From: Dicyema japonicum
Taxonomy: Eukaryota > Animalia > Dicyemida
Assembly: GCA_011109175.1 (NCBI GenBank)
Contig: RDEW01000008.1
Location: 1,600,513-1,664,512 of the forward strand
Direction of reading: 5' to 3'
DNA: 64,000 bases
Each line of letters starts with the position of its first letter. Position 1 is the first letter of the stretch. The notes below the pieces were generated by a model, which ran no database searches, was not told where the DNA came from, and was given only the letters and a program-made list of their open reading frames with translations. Below, one piece after another: positions 33,195-45,639 of this stretch. The position numbers were made by a program, and so were the translations under genes.

Positions 33195-33240
33195 TAATTT
33201 TATTCTCCACCAATGAAAATTTATACTTGACTCATAATAT
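33195..33240 (+). promoter_or_regulatory. Conserved upstream block of the NR paralogs with a TGA(C/G)TCA site (homologs near 38790-38835, 41725-41770 and 44800-44845 on the minus strand)
   Basis: An attttaytc..caatgaaa-tttatacttgaStcata block is retained upstream of all four ATGs while neighbouring sequence diverges. Confidence 0.55.
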
Positions 33241-33257: not shown

Positions 33258-34150
33258 ATGGAGCATTGCAGAGTATGTAATAGGTTATGTAATACAATAA
33301 GTGGAATATGTGTTGTATGTAAACAATTTTTTAAGTAGTAAAATATTATAAACTTAATAGGAACCACATCAATAAATGTATTAAAATTATTTGTCAAAGT
33401 GAAATTCCATGCGAACCAAATGGATTGAATAGAAATTATTGTAGAGATTGCAGATTTAAAAAATGTATAGAGCAAGGACTAACCCTACAAAGTTTGATAA
33501 TGTTGTCATTTTTAGATATCTATGATAATATTCATAGTCGAATGAGGCATCTAACACCATTTAATAAAGTTTCATATATTAATGATAAATTGGATCGGGT
33601 ATTTTGAATTATAGTTTTAGTCAATTAAATTCGACTCCGTCATAACTTTTTTAGAAAATCATGAAAATTATAATATCCAAATAGACTATTTTACGGAATT
33701 GAACAAAATTTGGATCGAAAAATTTATAGAATTCGAACAAATTCAAATTACAACAACGGTAATGAATGGATAATTTTTGTAGGATTTGGAAAATTATTAT
33801 AGTTACATTGCGAAGGCTAATATTGTCATTAATTGCTTAATAAATTGCAATTATAGAGTAATTTGCAGCATTGGAGATTCAGATAAATTACAATTCATAA
33901 TGAAATACAATAATTTGCAAGACTATAAAATTATTTAAATATATCATACGCCGAATATAGACTATTTAGGATTTTGTGCTTTTTAAATATTTGTATGACA
34001 ATTCAAATTCAAATATGTTTTAAATACTACGAATATTTTGGATATTTATATGAAGTTCGTTCATGTAACAGCAATGATTTACGTCTACTATTATTTGTCA
34101 TTAAAGAAATATTGGAAATGTCATTAATTCTCCATAGAATCATTAATTAG
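33258..34150 (+). CDS. Mini nuclear receptor copy A (C4 zinc-finger DBD plus reduced LBD)
   Basis: Splicing introns 33335-33360, 33492-33515, 33599-33620 and 33759-33782 gives MEHCRVCNRLCNTISGICVVCKQFFKNHINKCIKIICQSEIPCEPNGLNRNYCRDCRFKKCIEQGL... One -1 shift in an A-run near 33928. Confidence 0.85.
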
Positions 34151-34659
34151 GAAAAATATATTTTTTATTTATTGGGTTTTAATTTTTCTTGTTCAATTCT
34201 ATATAATGTCAGTAATTTATAGTTCTTGAGATTTGAGCTTTAGAACTGGTTCTTCCGAAAACCTTCAAAGTTTAACTTTCTCGTTTATGATATGGGCATC
34301 ATCCGTCTCTGGCTGGGAGAAAAGTTTGGGATATCTTTGCTACCCTGGACCACCAGGTCTCGACGTCAAAATAATGTATCTTTGGAGCGCCCTGTCTTAG
34401 CGGCGTTTTGTGACGGTTACCAGTTTCCTATAAGTTAGCGAAACTTTCATTATCTCTTACGTTCTGGTAGCGCACAGGCCACCAACCTACTGCACCAATA
34501 AAGTGAAGCATTTTCTTCACTTCATTAGAAGATTTCATACCTGGCGACGTTCTGCCTTGTCTTTTTCGCTCATATATAGACACAATGAAACGAGGTTAAC
34601 ATTTCTACAATTAAATTTTTAGGGGATGATCTAATAAAAAACAAATATAAAATTAAAAA

Positions 34660-35460
34660 AAATGAAATACACTTAATCATTTTTTGCATATATCATCAAT
34701 ATCTGGTCGTATGGCTGACAACACCACTCGCATTTCTGCATAAATATTTTTCAAAATTTCCCGTTTTTTTTTATTTAATTTGAAAACAGCGTAGAAAAAT
34801 TGTTTCTCATAAATATGTCGTTGAAAATTGTCAAAAAATTGTTAGTGCTTGTGTAGATGATATGTGATATATGTTTCCAGAATTCCGTTAAACAGTTCAA
34901 TAAGTTCTTTATTTTCTTTAGCAGATAAGTGTTCTAAAACACAATGAGATGATTCTATCTCATTATTTTTAGATTTAACTAATGAAACAAGTCCATTAAC
35001 ACGACCAGACTTACACGGGGCTCTATTTGTACCTATAACAATACAATTGGCAAATGCAATATTATTGAAATTGAAATAATCATTCATTATCGTGAACATT
35101 TCAATTGCTCGAGTAGTAATTAAAATAGGCTTACATAACAAGTATTGTTCTGTAATTTTCCCAAAATTGACAAATCGTATATATGCCAACAAATGTGAAA
35201 TTCCTGAAATGTCTGGATTCATCAAGTTGTAATAAAAAACGAGTTTCATTAATAGAAAATAAGACATTGTTTTCAATATTCTCCGACAAAGAACAGATGA
35301 GACAGTGTTTTCTGACAAAGGTATTTTCATTATTTTTTGTTCATATTTATGACCAAATATGGCCCGGCTTTAACTTTTAGATTGCATCTGTGATTATGGC
35401 CTCCTCGTTTTCTAATTTTTCATCATAATAGCGTACATTATTTGCCTTTAAAAAAAGTTT
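34660..35460 (-). mobile_element. hAT (Buster/Charlie; ZBED5/SCAND3-like) transposase relic
   Basis: IPLSENTV, DISGISHLLAYIRFV, IGTNRAP...GLV, SHCVL, EMRVVLSAIRPDI. Confidence 0.72.
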
Positions 35461-37861
35461 ACTTCATTTAATAAAATATTTTCCTTCTTTTTTATATCCT
35501 TATTTCCTTATATCCTTCTTCCTCATATCTTTAAGTAAAACCGTCAAAATTCTGATATCTTTTGATCAGTATATGATAGGAAAAAGTCAATTTGTCTAAT
35601 GATTTCAATATTTTTCTTCAACTGAAAGATTTATACATTTTCTTGACATATTTGAGGAGCTAAAACAATTAAATCTTAGGTTATCAACAACCTGCTGGCT
35701 ATTCAAGCGAATCTCGCTCGCTATCCTGAGAGGAAATAGCCACGCAGTCAGGGCAGCCTCTATATAACCGTTTACTCTATTTTCTTTTTTCAATGAAATT
35801 TAAATAATTAAAAAAAACAAAGAAGTGAAATTATTTCTTTAATTTAAAAAGAAAAATGTAAATAAATTTATATTATAACTTTTTAAAATAAATTTTAATG
35901 AACTATTTTTTAAAAAGATAGCGGTTTAATAAAACTGGCGGTTAGTAGAGAGTTTGCCATATGATTTTTGGGATTTTCGTTAAAATTTGGCGGTTAATAA
36001 AAATAAGAAAATTGTAGCAGATATGAGTTATTTGAAAATTCAAATTAGTTCAATCAGTCCAACAGTAAAAGAAAACGAATTTTTATTAGAGAATTAAATA
36101 AGAATGTCATCATAGAGCTTCATCGAGTTATCCAAGGTAACTAAGAGAAAAATAAACCTGTAAATCATTCAAACCCGGCTAATTTAAATTCCCTGTTTCG
36201 ATTCAACGAAAACAACATTTCAACTTCCTAGAAATAGGTCTTTTCAATCGCATTGGTAATAAACATAGTTAATACTTAGGTCTCTATATTTAGCGCAAAT
36301 AATTCATATATATCAAAGTCAATAACCTGATACGTATTGGAAAAGTCCAGAGCCTCTAATACATATCTACTTCTTGATCACAATATGATTGGCCCCTCAT
36401 CTCATAAACATTCATGTGATTAGGGAGATCAGCCACGTTTTGGCAAAGTTCTTTAACAAGAAACATGATGATTGAAAATAGCACGGGAACCTCAAAAAAA
36501 AAAACCTTGTCAAATCTCATTTCCAATATTCTACCTGAGTTGTTCAATTTCAAACTTAAAGTTTATCAGACTAAATAAAGATGCCTTGTTTTATGTCTCA
36601 GTTTCAGGACTACAAATATCATAGTACTTGAAGAAGTGCTTCGCTAATAATACACGGAAAAATCCCCGACTTTCCCGAACACAATTATCAAACTGTTAAC
36701 TAACTGAAACAGAATCATCTCACACTGTTCTGCGGTCGAAGTAGGATGCATACTTTACAACACTTTTTCTCAACAAGGGGCGAATTTTACTTGTTAAGGA
36801 GCAATTTTTTATTTAGTGATTTTTAAATTATAATAATAATAACAACACCAGAGACTACGGTTACAAAAACTAACTAATCACGTGATCCAGCACGCTCTAC
36901 CAGAACCTCAACTTGGTCCAATTCTCCTCCCTTGACCACAAAAGCACGTATCGGCCAGAATAACTGAATAAAAAACATAAAAAAAACAAGGACAAAAGAA
37001 GAAAAATAAATTCATTAATAAATGCCTACAATCCACAAACTACTCAAGATTTTTCTATTAATATAAAGTCGCGTATTTTTTGCCAATACTGTTTTTTTAA
37101 TTATTTTATTATATACAACCTCCATTGTCAAGAGTGCAATACCTCCATATGTAGAAATGTCTTTTAAACATATTGCCCAAAGGGAATCTTAAGAATTATT
37201 AAAAACTATTCCATTCAGTAACTTACAATGCTAGGATGATTTGATGATATATAATCGTTACTTTTAAAAACATTTAAATCTAGAAAAAAACTCATATAAT
37301 ATAGTCTCTGCAATAGCGATGATCGCAAATACTATGCATTTATGAATTTTTAAAACAAAAATGCAAAATGCGATATTTATACATTGTATACAACGCAGGC
37401 AAAAGTTTGACGATAATTTATCGGTTAAACTGCATGAAAAATAAATATTGTAATACGAATTTACTTACTTTATCTCAAGCTATAATCACTTTTTCTAGAT
37501 TTTTAAAATTATTAACAGGTTTGAAAATTTTTTATAATGGCGATACGAAAAAAGAGATTGAGAAACACTGCTTTACAAGGATCAATTTGATCCATATATG
37601 TATTGTGAACCCTTTATTGGAGCATGGAAAAGATGGATCCTTTTTAGGATATCGCACATGGATTGTGGTCTTCGAGTAATTGGATCTCAAGATAGCTCTT
37701 AGGAATTGATAAAGGGAAGGAGAAGAAATAACCCTTTGATCAAGTAGGCAGTACCCTGGGAATCTTACCAACTCGACAGTAATAACAAGCTACTAGTATA
37801 AATTAATGAATAATTCAATGAGAAAAATTAAAACCCAACATATTATAAATTAAATTTTTTG

Positions 37862-38754
37862 CTAATTAAGGATTCTACAGAGAATCGTTGACATTTCTAA
37901 TATTTCGTCAATGATATATAAAAGTACACTGTAATCGTTGTTGTTATATGAACGAGCCTCATATAAATATCCTAAATACTCACTGTATTTCATATATATT
38001 GGAATTTGATTTGCTGTACAAATTCTTAAAAAGCACAAAATCCTAAGTAGTCTATACTCGACGTTTGATATATTTAAACAATTATAGTTTTTTAAATTAT
38101 TGGATTTCGTTATAAATTGTAATTTATCTGAATTTCCTAAAATGCAAATTTCAGTATTTTTGGAATTCCTTAACAAATTAATGACAATGTTAGCTTTCGT
38201 GGTGGAATTATATAAATGGTTCATGTTCTACAAATGTTATCAAATTAATTACTATCACTGAAAATTGTATTTTTTCGAATTCTTTAAATTTTTCGACCCA
38301 AATTCTGTTTAATTCCGTAAAATAATCTATTTGGTAAATATATTTGTCACGATTTTCTAAAAAACTAATAACGGAGTTAAATTTTATTGACTAAAACTAT
38401 AATTCCAAAATACCTCATTCAATTTATCCGTAATAAATATAACTTTATGGAGTGGTGTTAGATCTATCATTTGATTCTCAATACCAATGTAGATGTCTAA
38501 AAATAACAACATCTTCAAACATTCTGGACTTAGTCCCTGTTCTATACATTTTTTAAATCTGCAATTTCTACAATACCTGCTACCCCATGTATTTGGTCCG
38601 CAAGGAATTTGGCTATCACAGATAATTCGAGGGCATGATTTGATATGATATCTGTTAAGTTTATAATATTTTTTTACTTGAAAAATTGTTTACATGCAGT
38701 GCATATTCCCATCGTTGCATTACTTATCTTACCGCATACTCTGCATTGCGCCAT
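37862..38754 (-). CDS. Mini nuclear receptor copy B, intact, 264 aa after splicing
   Basis: Removing four introns (26, 24, 23, 25 nt; the first is 38652-38677) gives an uninterrupted frame: MAQCRVCGKISNATMGICTACKQFFKYHIKSCPRIICDSQIPCGPNTWGSRYCRNCRFKKCIEQGL...IWVEKFKEFEKI...NISNVEYRLLRILCFL...STILCRILN*. Confidence 0.88.
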
Positions 38755-39099
38755 TTTTTAATTTGTTGCTTATTCAAATATATATTATGTTATATGACTC
38801 AAGTATAAAATTTCATTAGCAGAGAGTAACATTATTTTTGGTACTTTTTGCATTATCTGGCTTCCACTTTATAGCGAATTAAAAAATAATTACTGTAATT
38901 AAAATTATATTTTATTAAAAAATTATTTTTATATTATATTCTTTGCATCTAGTTAACAACTGGTCATCTTTGTAATTTTTTAGAATTTTTAATTTTATTT
39001 TCCTGTCTCCATAAAATCCTTGAAATAGCTAATTAGAATTTTCGTGTTGTTCTGTGTGCTTATTATTAACACTAACCCACATTCTAATGTATAAATTAG

Positions 39100-39700
39100 T
39101 AGTTGTAAACCGCTCAAAATGCTGTGTATGTGCACCCGTTGTAAAATCCACAAAATATTAGCGGCTATTGACTTTCAGATGATCATATCCCACCTCTTTG
39201 AGGGAATTTGGAATATCTTCTCCAGCAGTCACATAGGAACATCGATCATTATTCCACATTTTTAGGCCATTCTTAAAAATGGCAGTTGTCAGATTCTCCA
39301 TATTTCGGTTGGGGATTGCTTCCGAGAAACATTGTTTAGTTTCTCTGCATATCTCCCCGAATACCAATTGTTCGAGTAACATCCGGCCTTGGCTACACTT
39401 TCTCTTTGAAAAATTAATTTCGTAATCTCAACACCATCCCCTCCACCTAATATTATTTGATTTTTTTCTTACCAATTTTTCATCTTGGAAGACGATTTAG
39501 CGATAACACGCATATTTCGCGCATATATACTGACCAATCGACTGTTGTAATCATGGCTCATCCAAGATTTTTTCCACGGAGTTCAACGAAGATATATTTT
39601 TGGTTCACATATATTAACCTAATCATATCCTCGAATTTTACTTTAGTTCCCTTTAACCACGTTCCCGTAAAAATTGATAATGATTTCAATATCGGTTCTC
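39100..39700 (-). mobile_element. Merlin / IS1016 (ISXO2-like) transposase relic
   Basis: EQLVFGEICRETKQCF...GYDHLKVN...FVDFTTGAHTQ. Confidence 0.72.
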
Positions 39701-40194
39701 AGAGATAAGTTAGATCGGCACACTTTTTTTTATAATACTATGACCGATGGAATGTCTCAAATCTTAGAATGTCTCTAACACGCAATAATTCTAGGGTCAT
39801 TCTTCCGCAGCAATGGAAGCCGCGTTATTTTTACTATTAAAAAAACTTTCTCACTAAAAAAATTATTTTTTTAAACTCGCTAAAAATAGATGTCAGATTA
39901 TGGATATTTTTTCTTTAAATTGAATACTTTTTAATTGTTTAAAAACTCTACTATTATTTTACTTATTACATATTTTCAGATTTTTATTTCGAAAAAATTC
40001 AGTCCGACGAATTCCAGAAGTCAAGTAAACTTGACGGCTACGATAAAATTTCATTAGTAATAATTGTGAAAAATCATATATTACTCATTTCAGTTTTTTA
40101 AACACTTGTTTGACCCAATGTCATTAAACTTTAATAACTTATTTTTTAATTAAAATTTAATTAAAGTCAATAAAGTTAATTTTTGAGGCAAGGT

Positions 40195-41190
40195 CTCCAT
40201 TATGGTATGCAGGCATTGAGGACGCAATGGGGATTACCATATGTTTTGGAAGATTCATCGTTTCATTCTAGGCTCTTCCTTTTGCAGTTCTGCAAGCAAC
40301 CCGATTAACCCTGAAGTGCCGAAGCCAAAGGACATCAGACGTCTCAAGTTAGATCGACTGGAAGGCAAATCAATCCACAATGGCACCGTACTTCCTCCTT
40401 TCGACCTGCGCACAACGATTACTTGAGCAGATTTGCCTTCGAGAAAGTATTCGTGCACTTTGAATCTTAGGCAAGACACCATTCTCCACGGAATGGCCGT
40501 TACATAGTCCTGCCTCTTGCTATCACCAATTTAAAGTCCGACGGGTTCCAGAAGTCAAGTAAACTTAACAGATACGATAGCCTTCATGACAGTTGAGTTT
40601 AGAATGGTGTGACGAGGGAATCTCCCAGGGTTCTGTCTGCATGACAGAGTTAACCATCTACCGCACCGGAATCAGTGTTCTAACCAGATATCGAGGCTTA
40701 GCCGAAAAACAACTCCAACACGCATAGTAGTATCGCGATCCAGTAGAGTAACAAATATGTGTACCGGAAGGATCGAATTATCAGCGGACCCCACATTCAG
40801 AAATGTGCTGCGATGAGTATCTGCGAACATTCAAGTTCTTTTAATGCATTTCTCGAAGAATTTTATCCTACCAGTTTAGGATTAGGAAATGAATTTTTCG
40901 GAACATCTAGCATGATTGTAGTGCAGTGTCGCACAACCGTGTTACGCACATGGGCGTTAGTTGTGAGATTTGACTCTCGAATAGTGCGATATCAATCATA
41001 TGATTTGAAAAAAAATTCCTCAAAATTGTTCTTTTGCTAGAATAATCGTGCTTTTCAGGAGGCTGAAAACAAGATGGAGCACGTCGCCAATGATTGGAGC
41101 GAAACGAAGATAATTGATCTTTTTTGATACTCATTAAGGCACCCTTATGTGAGCTGCCAGGTCAGAGATAGTGAATTACGTGACGCAGCT
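40195..41190 (-). mobile_element. CRE-like RLE fragment
   Basis: Minus strand reads degenerate LLEPVGL...IAVENGV...SSKTYGNPHCVL; homologous to 24664-25611. Confidence 0.6.
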
Positions 41191-41431
41191 CTAATATGAA
41201 TTTTTATTAATTTAATAACCCAGGATGTACCCTAAAAATGGTTAAGAATTATTTAGCGTCTAAATAAGGTAAATCTAGTTCTTACGGTAGAAGTGGGATG
41301 GATCCTTCTGAAAGTCAAGTTCATCCATATCTTCCATTATGAACTCTTCCAATGGAGTAGGAAAAAGAAAGATTTTTAGATGCCACCCAGAGTTAGGGGT
41401 CTTCCGAGTATGTTTGACCTCATGAGGCCTC

Positions 41432-41689
41432 TTAGGAATTGATAAAGGCAAAGAGAAGAAAGAATCCTTTCATTAATAAGAGGTGTAAGCTGGACGGTAA
41501 AAGCGATAAGTCTTCTTCCCTTCGTCTATTCGATTCGCATGGAATTTCATGCTGACAAATCATTTTAGGACATAATTTTACGTGGCTCCTATTAAGTTTA
41601 TAATATTTTCTACTTAAAAATTGTTTACATGCTTTGCATACTCCCGTCTTTGCATTACTTAGTCTACCGCATACTTTGCAACGCCTCAT
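41432..41689 (-). pseudogene. Mini nuclear receptor copy C, internally deleted (first finger and half of second only)
   Basis: MRRCKVCGRLSNAKTGVCKACKQF...CQHEIPCE, then joins directly to the block that lies downstream of copies B and D. LBD exons are absent. Confidence 0.8.
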
Positions 41690-41809
41690 TTTTTAATTTT
41701 TGTTTTTTTTCCAAATATATAGTATATCATATGTTTCAAGTATAAAATTTCATTGATGGATAATAAAATTATTTTTTTAATTTTTAAAAATATTGAAATA
41801 TAAAACCTT

Positions 41810-42515
41810 CAGAGTATGGCCATTCCAATCTTTTGTCTCAGCCATATCGCTTCTCGTTGATCCCTTTTCTTTCTGGAAAGCATTCCTCCGAGTTCGCGCA
41901 AGAACTCAGCCTTCATTAAACCAACGGCTCCCTATGACTCGACCGCAACAGGAGTAAATCGGAAGTGGTCCCCGAGGGAAGAATATTTCTTGTTTTTTAG
42001 GTTTTCCGCGGTCGAAGCAGCTGCTCCAGGTGTTTGAACCGATTTGAAAAGATTTGTGATTGAAAATATGTCAACACAAGTTGCATCCAGACCAAAAATC
42101 TTCCGGATGTGTAGGGGAAAAGGGTCATCCCGTCAGGTCTCTTTCCATCTTCTCGATCGAGACCCACTGGTTCAAGCTGATATGGGAAGCCTGTAGCCTT
42201 CAGAGCTCTGACGATCACAACGTTCAGAGCAGTGTGACGTGGTCCTCTTCCGGCGCTTTTCTGCAGGACAGCGGATGCAATCCCTTCGCATTGACTATTT
42301 TCTTGCATCGGCATCAGTGCTCCTGGCAAACGTCTAGTCCTAGCCTTTTTCCGATTCTAATACTCAAAGAATCGTCATCCAAAAAAGTCCCTAGGTTTGG
42401 GCAAGGTATGGCAGTAAGCCATGCTTCACTCCCTCCACTTGAAGCTGACACCAAACAAGCCAGACGATGTTGGTTTGCTTTTTTTTGAAGTCTTCCAAAA
42501 TTTTGGAGCAGACAG
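41810..42515 (-). mobile_element. Second closely related truncated CRE-like copy
   Basis: Aligns by eye almost base for base with 24862-25560. Confidence 0.85.
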
Positions 42516-42769
42516 TTTTTTATTAGATATTTTCAGATTTTACAATTTCTGAAAAAATAAAAATTTCATATTGATGAATTTCAAAAAATCATAGATTATT
42601 CATTATAGTTTTTAATATCGGTGTAGCCCTATGTCTTAGATAAGTGAATTCTTGGAGTCTGCCAAGAATGATACTACTAGTATCATTAGTATCATACTAG
42701 AACCACTCGATGGATTTCGATTTTGTATATTTTTATTATTCCACAATAAAATCTAGATACTGCAAGCTA

Positions 42770-43275
42770 TGAACCAAGCCGAATGAGAAGCAAGTCAATG
42801 TCGCTTTTAATTACAAATCTATGCTTGTGGAAGTCAAAATTTAGTTCATTTTCCTAACTGCAAAGTACTCAAAAATCATGCCAATTCTGACTGAATCTGT
42901 ACTTACATTTACTAAATATTAGAGTCACCTTGAGTGATTTCTCAAATGAGTTCCAGGAAAGATTTAGTGATTTCTCATTATTTGAATTCCAATTTTCATT
43001 ATTCTTGGCACCTTTAACCTCTGATGTTGTCAAATCAGAAATAAACTTGCAGATGTATTAGAACTGCAGTCTGATTCTACACTCAGAGCAAAATACCTAG
43101 AGTGGGGATACTTGGCTTTTATTCATACTTTCCTGAAAAGTTTACGAACTTCAAAAAGTTTTCAACGGGTATTATGGAATGTTTGGTTCTACCTATGTGT
43201 GAGCAGTTGTTTTTCTTCATGAAATAACAAAATCTTCTCAGAGAACAAGGCAATCTGATGAAAACGTATCATTAC
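42770..43275 (+). mobile_element. hAT (GTF2IRD2-like) transposase C-terminal relic
   Basis: MFGSTYV(C)EQLFSFMK..KSSQRTRQSDEN dimerisation-domain motif. Confidence 0.6.
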
Positions 43276-43869
43276 TAGGGCCATTTTTTGACTTCATAAA
43301 TTCGAAATTTTGTCCTAAAAACTGACTTTATTGACTTTAAAATTCCAAAATTTTGACTTTTTTGACTTTATGACAAAATTATCTAAAAAAATTTTTAATC
43401 AAAAACATTGTTAAAATATAGAATAACAAAATTCAAAACGTTTTCAGGTTAAAAATCTCGGTCTTAGATAGTAATTTTATCAATGGAATAAGATTTTTCA
43501 AATGCCCGTATATGCATAAGAATTATTTAGCGTCTAATTAAGGTAAATCCAGTTCTTACGGTCGAAGTGGGATGGATCCTTCCGAAAGTCAAGTTAATCC
43601 ATATCCGCCATTGTGAACTCTGCTAAATGAGTAGGAAAAGGAGGGATTTTTAGATTCCACCCAGGGTTAAGGGGTCTCCCGAGTATGTTTGAACTCATGA
43701 GGCCTCTTAAGAATTGATAAATGCAAAGAGAAGGAATCGTTTCACCAAGTAGGTAGTTGTGTTGGAATCTTGCCAACTGCTAGATGGTACTAACAATTTA
43801 CAAGTATAAATTACTGAATAATTGAATAAGAAAAATTATAAACCAACATATTATAAATTAATTTTTTTA

Positions 43870-44761
43870 CTAATTAAGGATTCTTTGAAGAATCGTTGAC
43901 ATTTCAAATATTTCTTTAATGACATAAAAAAGTAAACAGAAATCGTTGTTGTTACGCGAACGAACATCATATAAATATCCAAAATACTGTAAGCATTTAA
44001 AATATATTTGAATTTGATTTGCTATACAAATATTTAAAAAGCATAAAATCCTAAATAGTCTATACTCGACCTTTGATATATTTAAAAAATTTTTATAGTA
44101 TAGTAAATTATTGAATTTCATTAGAAATTGCAATTTGTTAGAATCTACAATGTCTAAAATTTCCCTATAGTTGCAATTCATTAAGCAATTAATGACAATA
44201 TTGGCATTTTTGGTAAAACTATAATAATTGTCCATATCCTATAAATTTTAAAAATTGATTACCGTTTCTGATAATTGTATTTGTTCGAATTCTATAAATT
44301 TGTCTACCCAAATTTTGTTCAATTTCGTAAAATAATCTTTTTGTAAAATATATTTTTCATGATTTTCTATAAAAGTTCTAACTGACTTAAATGTAATTGA
44401 CTAAAACTGTAATTCCAAAATACCTCATTCAATTTATTCATAATGTATAAAACTTTTTCCATTGGTGTTTTATTTTCTATTTTATTTTCAATACTATTAT
44501 AAATGTCTATGAATAAAAACATTTTCAAACATTGAGTGGTTAGTCCCTTCTGTATACATTTCCGGAATCTGCAGTGTCTACAATATCTTTTATTCCATCT
44601 AGTCGTTCGCATGGAATTTCACTTTGACATAATTTTTTAGGACATAAATTGATGTGTCTCCTATTAAGTTTATAATATTTTCTACTTGAAAAATCTTTAC
44701 ACGGAGTGCATATTCCCATAATTATATTATTTAGATTTCCACATACTCTGCAGGGCCTCAT
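43870..44761 (-). CDS. Mini nuclear receptor copy D (two -1 shifts in the DBD; pseudogene or sequence error)
   Basis: MRPCRVCGNLNNIIMGICTPCKDF...CQSEIPCE..RWNKRYCRHCRFRKCIQKGL, with the same four intron positions as A and B and open LBD exons. Confidence 0.8.
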
Positions 44762-45639
44762 TTTTTATTTTTTGTTTTTTTTTCAAATATATAATCTATT
44801 ATATGAGTCATGTATAAAATTTCATTGATGGCGAGTAAAATTATTTTTTATTTTATATGAAATAATTTTTTAGAGTTTTTTAATCATTCCAACTATTCAT
44901 TTAATTTAAAAATTTTACTGTTTCCGGAAAAGTATTCAGATTTTTTACTATTTCCGGATTAGTAATACACTTAAAATTTTATTACTGATAAATTCTGAAA
45001 AATCATATATTACTCATTTCAGTTTTTAATATTGTTTTAGCCGGATGTTCTTGAACTTTAATAGATATTTCCAAGATATTCAATCTTAAATAACTGAATT
45101 CTTTTAAGTCTCCACTCCTGAATGACACTAGACCAACTCGGTGTCCATTCGATTCTGGATATCTTTATTATTCCGACACTAAAATCCAGACATTTTTACG
45201 CATACAGATAATCTTCTGAGACAGCAATCATCAACCAACATAAATATCTCAAAATATTGTTAACATAATTTGTGTCATAGAGAAAAAACCAAGACTCTTA
45301 GTTTGGCTCTCTTACACAAGCAGTTGGGGTCGGTTTTCTCATGATCATGTTTGATCAAGTTCTCCTCCATTACTCTTTCGGATTGGAAACTCCAAGAGTC
45401 GTCATGATGCTTTTCTTTGATACCACTTCTCTTCATTCCAATAGCCTTTTTTGTGTTAGCCGCCATTTTCTGTGCAATTAGTCCAAGAGATTTAAGGTCC
45501 CCATGAGGCGCATGCATAGGAAATACACGGCTCATTTATTCTTGTAGAAAGCAGCATCCCATACAAAGGTTTCCTCTCTTGGAATGGGAAAATTGTGATC
45601 TCGTCTCCTCTGTCCAATTCATTTAATATTATTTCCGTT

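Follow-up and report, generated by a model that had tools for sequence, protein, structure and literature searches.

A stretch of 64,000 nucleotides from the genome of the dicyemid Dicyema japonicum (assembly GCA_011109175.1, contig RDEW01000008.1, positions 1,600,513 to 1,664,512 of the forward strand; hereafter the window) was analyzed for a group of related loci that had been noticed by a sequence-only reading of the same DNA. These loci, located around positions 33,258-44,761 of the window, most probably represent a lineage-specific cluster of small nuclear receptor-like transcription factor genes, an interpretation to which we assign a probability of about 0.78. Each full-length gene would comprise four exons and three spliceosomal introns of only 22-26 nt, and its predicted product of ~272 amino acids would begin with three residues, continue with a double zinc finger and end with ~200 residues resembling nothing detectable. 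Comparison of the copies with one another and with known families demonstrates, at the level of sequence, how the genes are built, that they are homologous to zf-C4, that the spliced frame is under selection, how large the family is and in what state each copy exists; judged in this way, the family is real, selectively maintained and lineage-specific, and has an unusual, shortened first finger. The members of the family, including one piece outside the window, are as follows.

33258-34150, plus strand: copy A, with exons 33258-33334, 33361-33598, 33621-33758 and 33783-34150
33335-33360 (26 nt), 33599-33620 (22 nt) and 33759-33782 (24 nt), plus strand: introns of copy A
37862-38754, minus strand: copy B, with exons 38754-38678, 38651-38414, 38390-38253 and 38227-37862
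38677-38652 (26 nt), 38413-38391 (23 nt) and 38252-38228 (25 nt), minus strand: introns of copy B
41243-41784, minus strand: copy C, a deletion remnant recognized by its homology to segments of copy D
43870-44761, minus strand: copy D, with exons 44761-44686, 44660-44424, 44400-44263 and 44238-43870 and introns of 25, 23 and 24 nt
Contig C223, 364966-365850: a fifth piece, a partial duplicate of copy A recognized by 89-93% identity to it

Several lines of evidence support the view that these proteins carry a DNA-binding domain of the nuclear receptor type (zf-C4), which would become visible only after the tiny introns are removed. When copy B is spliced, its cysteines are arranged as C-X2-C-X10-C-X2-C, X15, C-X5-C-X9-C-X2-C-X4-C, and the proposal that splicing restores the spacing C-X15-C-X5-C-X9-C-X2-C-X4-C was confirmed by counting in this frame. 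The linker between the two fingers (C21-X15-C37 in copy B) has the canonical length of 15 residues with one extra Cys inside. The second finger (C-X5-C-X9-C-X2-C) is also canonical and is followed by CRFKKC and QGL/KGL, that is, by a basic helix of the CRxxKC..GM type. In Pfam searches, for which the zf-C4 (PF00105) cut-off is 21.1 bits and the exons were searched separately, so that all scores are lower bounds, exon 2 of copy A alone reached 27.1 bits (E=5.8e-6, profile positions 31-68), and it was recovered at 26.5 bits in a genome-wide PF00105 scan. The in-frame second half of exon 2 of copy D scored 18.5 bits, just under the cut-off. A sequence search of PDB with exon 2 of copy B returned the ecdysone receptor DNA-binding domain as the best match (E=0.0015), followed by FXR, TR4 and the androgen receptor. 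In these alignments, the second finger of copy B falls into register with that of the ecdysone receptor, FXR and TR4, which identifies the first Cys of finger 2. The assignment of a nuclear receptor DNA-binding domain made by the sequence-only reading is thus upheld by an above-cut-off zf-C4 match for copy A and by PDB matches that are receptor DNA-binding domains. A homologous-protein search with exon 2 of copy A found nothing.

The first finger departs from the canonical form. It is C-X2-C-X10-C-X2-C in copies A, B, C and D, instead of the canonical X13 with a GxHYG loop. The start of the recognition helix (CKxFF) is kept, while the discriminating P-box residues are novel and different in every copy (CVVCKQFF in A, CTACKQFF in B, CKACKQF(L) in C and CTPCKDF(-) in D), so that none of them belongs to the canonical type C-E/D-G/S/A-C-K-G/A/S/V-F-F. 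The claim that there is no N-terminal A/B region also holds: in copy B, an in-frame TAA is present six bases upstream of the ATG, with the first Cys already at residue 4.

The gene model itself is strongly supported by comparison of the paralogs. In an alignment of copies A, B and D, their three GT..AG introns coincide in position and measure 26/22/24 nt in A, 26/23/25 nt in B and 25/23/24 nt in D; each intron varies by 1 nt among the copies, and the exons nevertheless stay in frame. The identical intron positions described previously are therefore found in these three genes, with three introns per gene, whereas copy C retains intron 1 only. Spliced copy B indeed gives one unbroken frame, the length of which is 272 amino acids (exons of 77, 238, 138 and 366 nt) and not the 264 amino acids first stated. 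When copies A and D were read in the spliced register of copy B, no stop codon was observed in ~270 aligned codons. In simulations in which the coding sequence of copy B was mutated neutrally to the observed divergence, ~11-12 new stops appeared, and the probability of finding none was at most 5e-5. Because no stop was seen where ~11-12 would be expected under neutrality, the spliced frame is under selection. Overall, the ratio of nonsynonymous to synonymous substitution rates (dN/dS) was 0.54-0.66, indicating weak constraint.

Introns 1 and 2 are more conserved than the surrounding coding sequence. Their identity between copies is 94%, slightly above that at synonymous third positions (81-84%), and the exons flanking them (68-83% identity between paralogs) are below intron identity as well, which suggests that most positions of these tiny introns are constrained. 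Read contigs assembled from four DNA runs of one sample contained no joints at the intron coordinates, as expected for DNA. Introns of this size are not foreign to the organism: in a 2026 survey, the only animals found with introns shorter than 30 bp were myxozoans and D. japonicum (PMC13644364), whose assembly comprises 67.5 Mb in 377 scaffolds with 36.7% GC and 49% repeats (PMC6736024). An intron of 23-31 nt also splits the DNA-binding domain of at least eight other zf-C4 genes of the genome; in six of eight such loci examined, this is a phase-0 intron between CEGCK and GFF, and a ninth canonical locus (on contig C24) apparently has it too. In the family described here, the corresponding intron is a phase-2 intron located 2 nt past FF, and copies A, B and D accordingly do not have the canonical gene structure.

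All four copies in the window also share a short element upstream of the start codon.

33210-33230, plus strand: conserved upstream element of copy A, 21 nt, ~30-50 nt before the ATG
38799-38819, 41736-41756 and 44808-44828, minus strand: the same 21-nt element of copies B, C and D, respectively

This element holds CCAAT-like and TATA-like stretches, and the last 80 nt before the ATG are 70-88% identical among the copies, compared with 30-60% further upstream. When the whole genome was searched with up to two mismatches allowed, only these four sites were found. The conserved element is family-specific and promoter-proximal.

The state of the individual copies was assessed from the assembly and from the read contigs. 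Homologous copies do occur at all four places where paralogs had been reported, but only two of them are intact (copy B, and copy A after read-based correction), not four; C is a remnant, and the assembled sequence of D is broken. Copy B is intact as assembled, and an independent read contig is identical to it over 37745-38465. Exon 4 of copy A is frameshifted as assembled, with one A absent after position 33926. This extra A is present in every read contig, in all four runs and at full depth, including contigs that start in unique upstream sequence with no more than two mismatches; with it, copy A encodes 273 amino acids and its exon 4 matches that of copy D in length. Since the extra A is found in all read contigs and restores the frame, the frameshift of copy A is an assembly error. 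At position 33874, the assembly has G and most read contigs have A, which would change Gly to Glu. Each of the four runs has one contig in which 33193 is followed directly by 37194, so that 4000 nt, including all of copy A, are skipped; the shorter side of this join is only 25 nt long, and it may be either a repeat artefact or a haplotype without copy A.

As assembled, copy D lacks one base in exon 1 (around 44696/44695) and another in exon 2 (around 44606/44605), so that it is out of frame with or without splicing of intron 1, while exons 3 and 4 are open. A search for contigs encoding exon 4 of copy D returned no match on record. Copy D has either been broken recently or been hit by single-base omissions of this assembly. 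In copy C, positions 41784-41525 correspond to copy D from its promoter through exon 1 and intron 1 to ~60 nt into exon 2, intron 1 being identical in the two copies at 25 of 25 bases, and positions 41472-41243 correspond to the 3' flank of copy D; ~850 nt of gene body have been deleted between them. The piece on contig C223 comprises exon 3, exon 4 and the 3' flank of copy A without the DNA-binding domain half, and it has accumulated stops, frameshifts and a 228-nt insertion at only 7-11% divergence from copy A, which shows how fast an unconstrained copy decays in this genome. Both copy C and the C223 fragment are dead.

The family as a whole is small. Three full-length copies (A, B and D), one remnant and one partial duplicate were found genome-wide, and no further members beyond these five pieces were recovered by genome-wide searches. 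The full-length paralogs share ~60-64% amino acid identity, with a nucleotide divergence of 20-23% overall and 17-32% by exon. These data support a family that is private to this genome and fast-diverging. Of the fast-evolving, lineage-specific expansion that had been proposed, the private character and the rapid evolution (dN/dS ~0.54-0.66) are thus borne out, but three full-length copies and two fragments do not amount to a large expansion. In the spacer between copies A and B (34652-36979), several segments, such as 35622-35815 and 36786-36979, have a read-contig word depth 100-1000 times the local level and correspond to high-copy repeats or transposon fragments. Six intergenic open reading frames, those of this spacer included, gave no match in Pfam.

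Several observations weigh against the interpretation of the cluster as nuclear receptor-like transcription factor genes. Exon 2 of copy B reached only 19.5 bits (E=0.0014) against zf-C4, just under the cut-off, and exon 1 (25 amino acids) alone had no zf-C4 match, giving only generic zinc-ribbon matches. The intron in the DNA-binding domain is located 11 nt 3' of the canonical phase-0 position between CEGCK and GFF. For exon 4, dN/dS between copies B and D was ~1, and the exons of A, B and D gave no match to the ligand-binding domain family Hormone_recep (PF00104) at E<=10. The Pfam search that had been suggested for the spliced protein, carried out here exon by exon, therefore had a divided outcome, with zf-C4 recovered for copy A and Hormone_recep for none of the copies.

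The last of these points concerns the ~206 residues that follow the DNA-binding domain. No Pfam family matched the C-terminal exons of A, B and D, and a genome-wide PF00104 scan had no match at this locus. Similarly, PDB sequence searches with exon 4 of copy B and with an A/B/D profile returned no ligand-binding domain, a profile of exon 4 of A, B and D had no match (0) among 1.84 billion representative proteins, and a search of the ESM Atlas by features gave no usable match. Alignment by hhalign against a canonical Dicyema ligand-binding domain yielded a probability of 0.2%, and a homologous-protein search with that canonical domain found nothing. The only weak profile match, to the leucine-rich repeat region of the relaxin receptor RXFP1 (E=0.28), was put down to composition and rejected; Pfam showed no leucine-rich repeat family even at E<=10. 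In structure prediction with AlphaFold, exon 4 had a predicted local distance difference test (pLDDT) score of 42, with three long helices and a hairpin region at low confidence; the exon 2 piece had a pLDDT of 63, with helices at 42-61 and 66-78 after the zinc finger (pLDDT 70-87), and a Foldseek search of this model against PDB returned nothing at E<=0.001. The sensitivity for a ligand-binding domain is limited by the separate searching of the exons and by the low pLDDT of the exon 4 model. Because no ligand-binding domain is detectable, the term nuclear receptor is limited here to the DNA-binding domain, and the C-terminal domain would be either orphan or unrecognizable.

Two accounts of this C-terminal part can be considered. 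On the one hand, it is conceivable, and we propose it only tentatively, that the genes encode dicyemid-only minimal transcription factors, in which a nuclear receptor DNA-binding domain has been joined to a new domain of ~200 residues other than a ligand-binding domain. On the other hand, the same residues might be a true but extremely diverged and compact ligand-binding domain, in which case the proteins would be complete miniature receptors; this too is a plausible possibility that falls short of being probable. A length of ~206 residues comes near the lower size limit of ligand-binding domains, the predicted models are mostly helical, and even canonical ligand-binding domains of Dicyema barely pass Pfam (25.7 bits, compared with a cut-off of 23.5). 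The single hhalign match is placed at the expected junction of helix 5 and the beta sheet, but at the very low probability given above; in addition, the exon 3 motif W-x3-F-x2-F-x2-I and the exon 4 motif EYRLLRIL presumably resemble helix 3 and helix 8, respectively. Weighing against complete receptors are the lack of any Hormone_recep match in the exons of A, B and D, of any ligand-binding domain in the PDB sequence searches and of any match among the 1.84 billion proteins, as well as the low confidence of the exon 4 model; nor is an AF-2-like (activation function 2) end evident.

Two other explanations question whether all copies are functional genes of the proposed structure. It is unlikely that the whole cluster consists of decaying pseudogenes, relics of a once-active gene, although the assembly shows three of the five copies as broken or as fragments, the region is repeat-rich, and dN/dS is high overall and near unity for exon 4 between B and D. 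The spliced frames of A and B are complete, and that of D is free of stops in register at 20-23% divergence, whereas the unconstrained copy on C223 broke within 7-11%; moreover, all copies have conserved splice sites and a conserved promoter-proximal element. Very improbable, in our view, is the idea that intron 1 has turned coding in the lineage of C and D. According to this scenario, the loss of one base in exon 1 and of another in the intron would bring exon 2 into frame through a stop-free 25-nt intron and insert ~8 residues (RKYYKLNR) into the region of the recognition helix. Both C and D do read through intron 1 in frame, their intron 1 sequences are the same at every base, and the downstream exons of D are still open. 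Nevertheless, eight AT-rich codons would be stop-free about half the time by chance, the gaps in exon 1 of C and D are at different aligned bases, D has a second frameshift in exon 2, the assembly is known from copy A to drop single bases, and such an insert would disrupt the DNA-reading helix.

If the cluster does encode nuclear receptor-like transcription factors, as we consider most probable, the proteins would bind DNA in the manner of such factors, and the differing P-boxes could confer different half-site preferences on the paralogs. They would probably need no classical ligand, and the C-terminal domain would be used for dimerization or cofactor contact; alternatively, this domain may be an extremely degenerate ligand-binding domain.

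Comparison with known systems places the family closest to the "divergent" nuclear receptors with atypical P-boxes, which arose by independent duplications among flatworms and molluscs (Wu and LoVerde 2021, PMC8363021). Like them, the Dicyema proteins combine a recognizable DNA-binding domain with a non-canonical P-box, lack orthologues beyond their own lineage and arose by local duplication, and the host lineage is likewise spiralian and allied to flatworms. Unlike them, they have a first finger three residues short, no A/B region, a length of ~272 amino acids and no detectable ligand-binding domain. Receptors with a DNA-binding domain but no ligand-binding domain have been described as the NR0A group (Knirps, KNRL and EGON of Drosophila), and others occur in arthropods and nematodes (PMC8363021). 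The resemblance to the NR0A group lies in the position of the DNA-binding domain at the very N-terminus, with unrelated sequence behind it, and in the presumed role as ligand-independent transcription factors; it concerns architecture only, and nothing suggests orthology. Knirps has the canonical 13-residue loop in its first finger.

The sequence-only reading had drawn an analogy with the supplementary nuclear receptors of nematodes, which is apt in kind but not in scale. Both groups are lineage-specific, fast-evolving and built of tandem duplicates with novel P-boxes. The supplementary receptors have hundreds of members, are derived from HNF4 and have kept the ligand-binding domain. By contrast, the Dicyema family consists of three full-length copies plus two fragments; neither a parent nor a ligand-binding domain can be recognized for it, and it thus does not form a large family of tens to hundreds of copies with ligand-binding domains. 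The canonical receptors of the same genome belong to the same domain family and also have a tiny intron between the two fingers; however, they have C-X2-C-X13-C-X2-C, a P-box of the CEGCKGFF type and a phase-0 intron between CEGCK and GFF, whereas in the family described here the spacing is X10, the P-box varies and the intron, in phase 2, is displaced by 11 nt in the 3' direction. Cross-matches between the two sets reached only 28-30% identity at best.

At the genome level, the PF00105 scan detected at least 20 separate zf-C4 loci. In the genome paper (Lu et al.), 8 zf-C4 but only 4 Hormone_recep genes were counted in D. japonicum, and proteins with a DNA-binding domain only are therefore already present in the published annotation; genes of the cluster may be among them. 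Compared with the 8 genes counted, at least 20 loci make the receptor set look under-annotated, and no description of the dicyemid nuclear receptor set was found in the literature. A separate locus on contig C345 (1076638-1080333) contains one first-finger exon followed by at least 12 second-finger units in a 232-nt tandem repeat; each unit has an open frame, covers positions 25-62 of PF00105 at 36-44 bits and is 97-99% identical to the others, so that the locus represents an amplified array of second-finger exons.

The locus also illustrates two features of gene finding in this organism, namely that a reading based on open reading frames misses genes and that single-base omissions of the assembly can make intact genes resemble pseudogenes. 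Dicyemids are among the most reduced animals, with ~30 cells and ~5,000 genes, and they have been reported to possess the smallest transcription factor repertoires of any bilaterian examined. A private and still-duplicating receptor-like family runs counter to this trend of loss and would be a candidate for regulating biology specific to the parasite. The shortened first finger, together with the paralog-specific P-boxes, provides a natural test of how far the DNA-binding domain can be reduced and how its specificity diverges. If the C-terminal part does prove to be a new domain, these genes would represent a nuclear receptor DNA-binding domain that was recruited into a new architecture, with its DNA specificity diversifying, in a parasite of ~30 cells.

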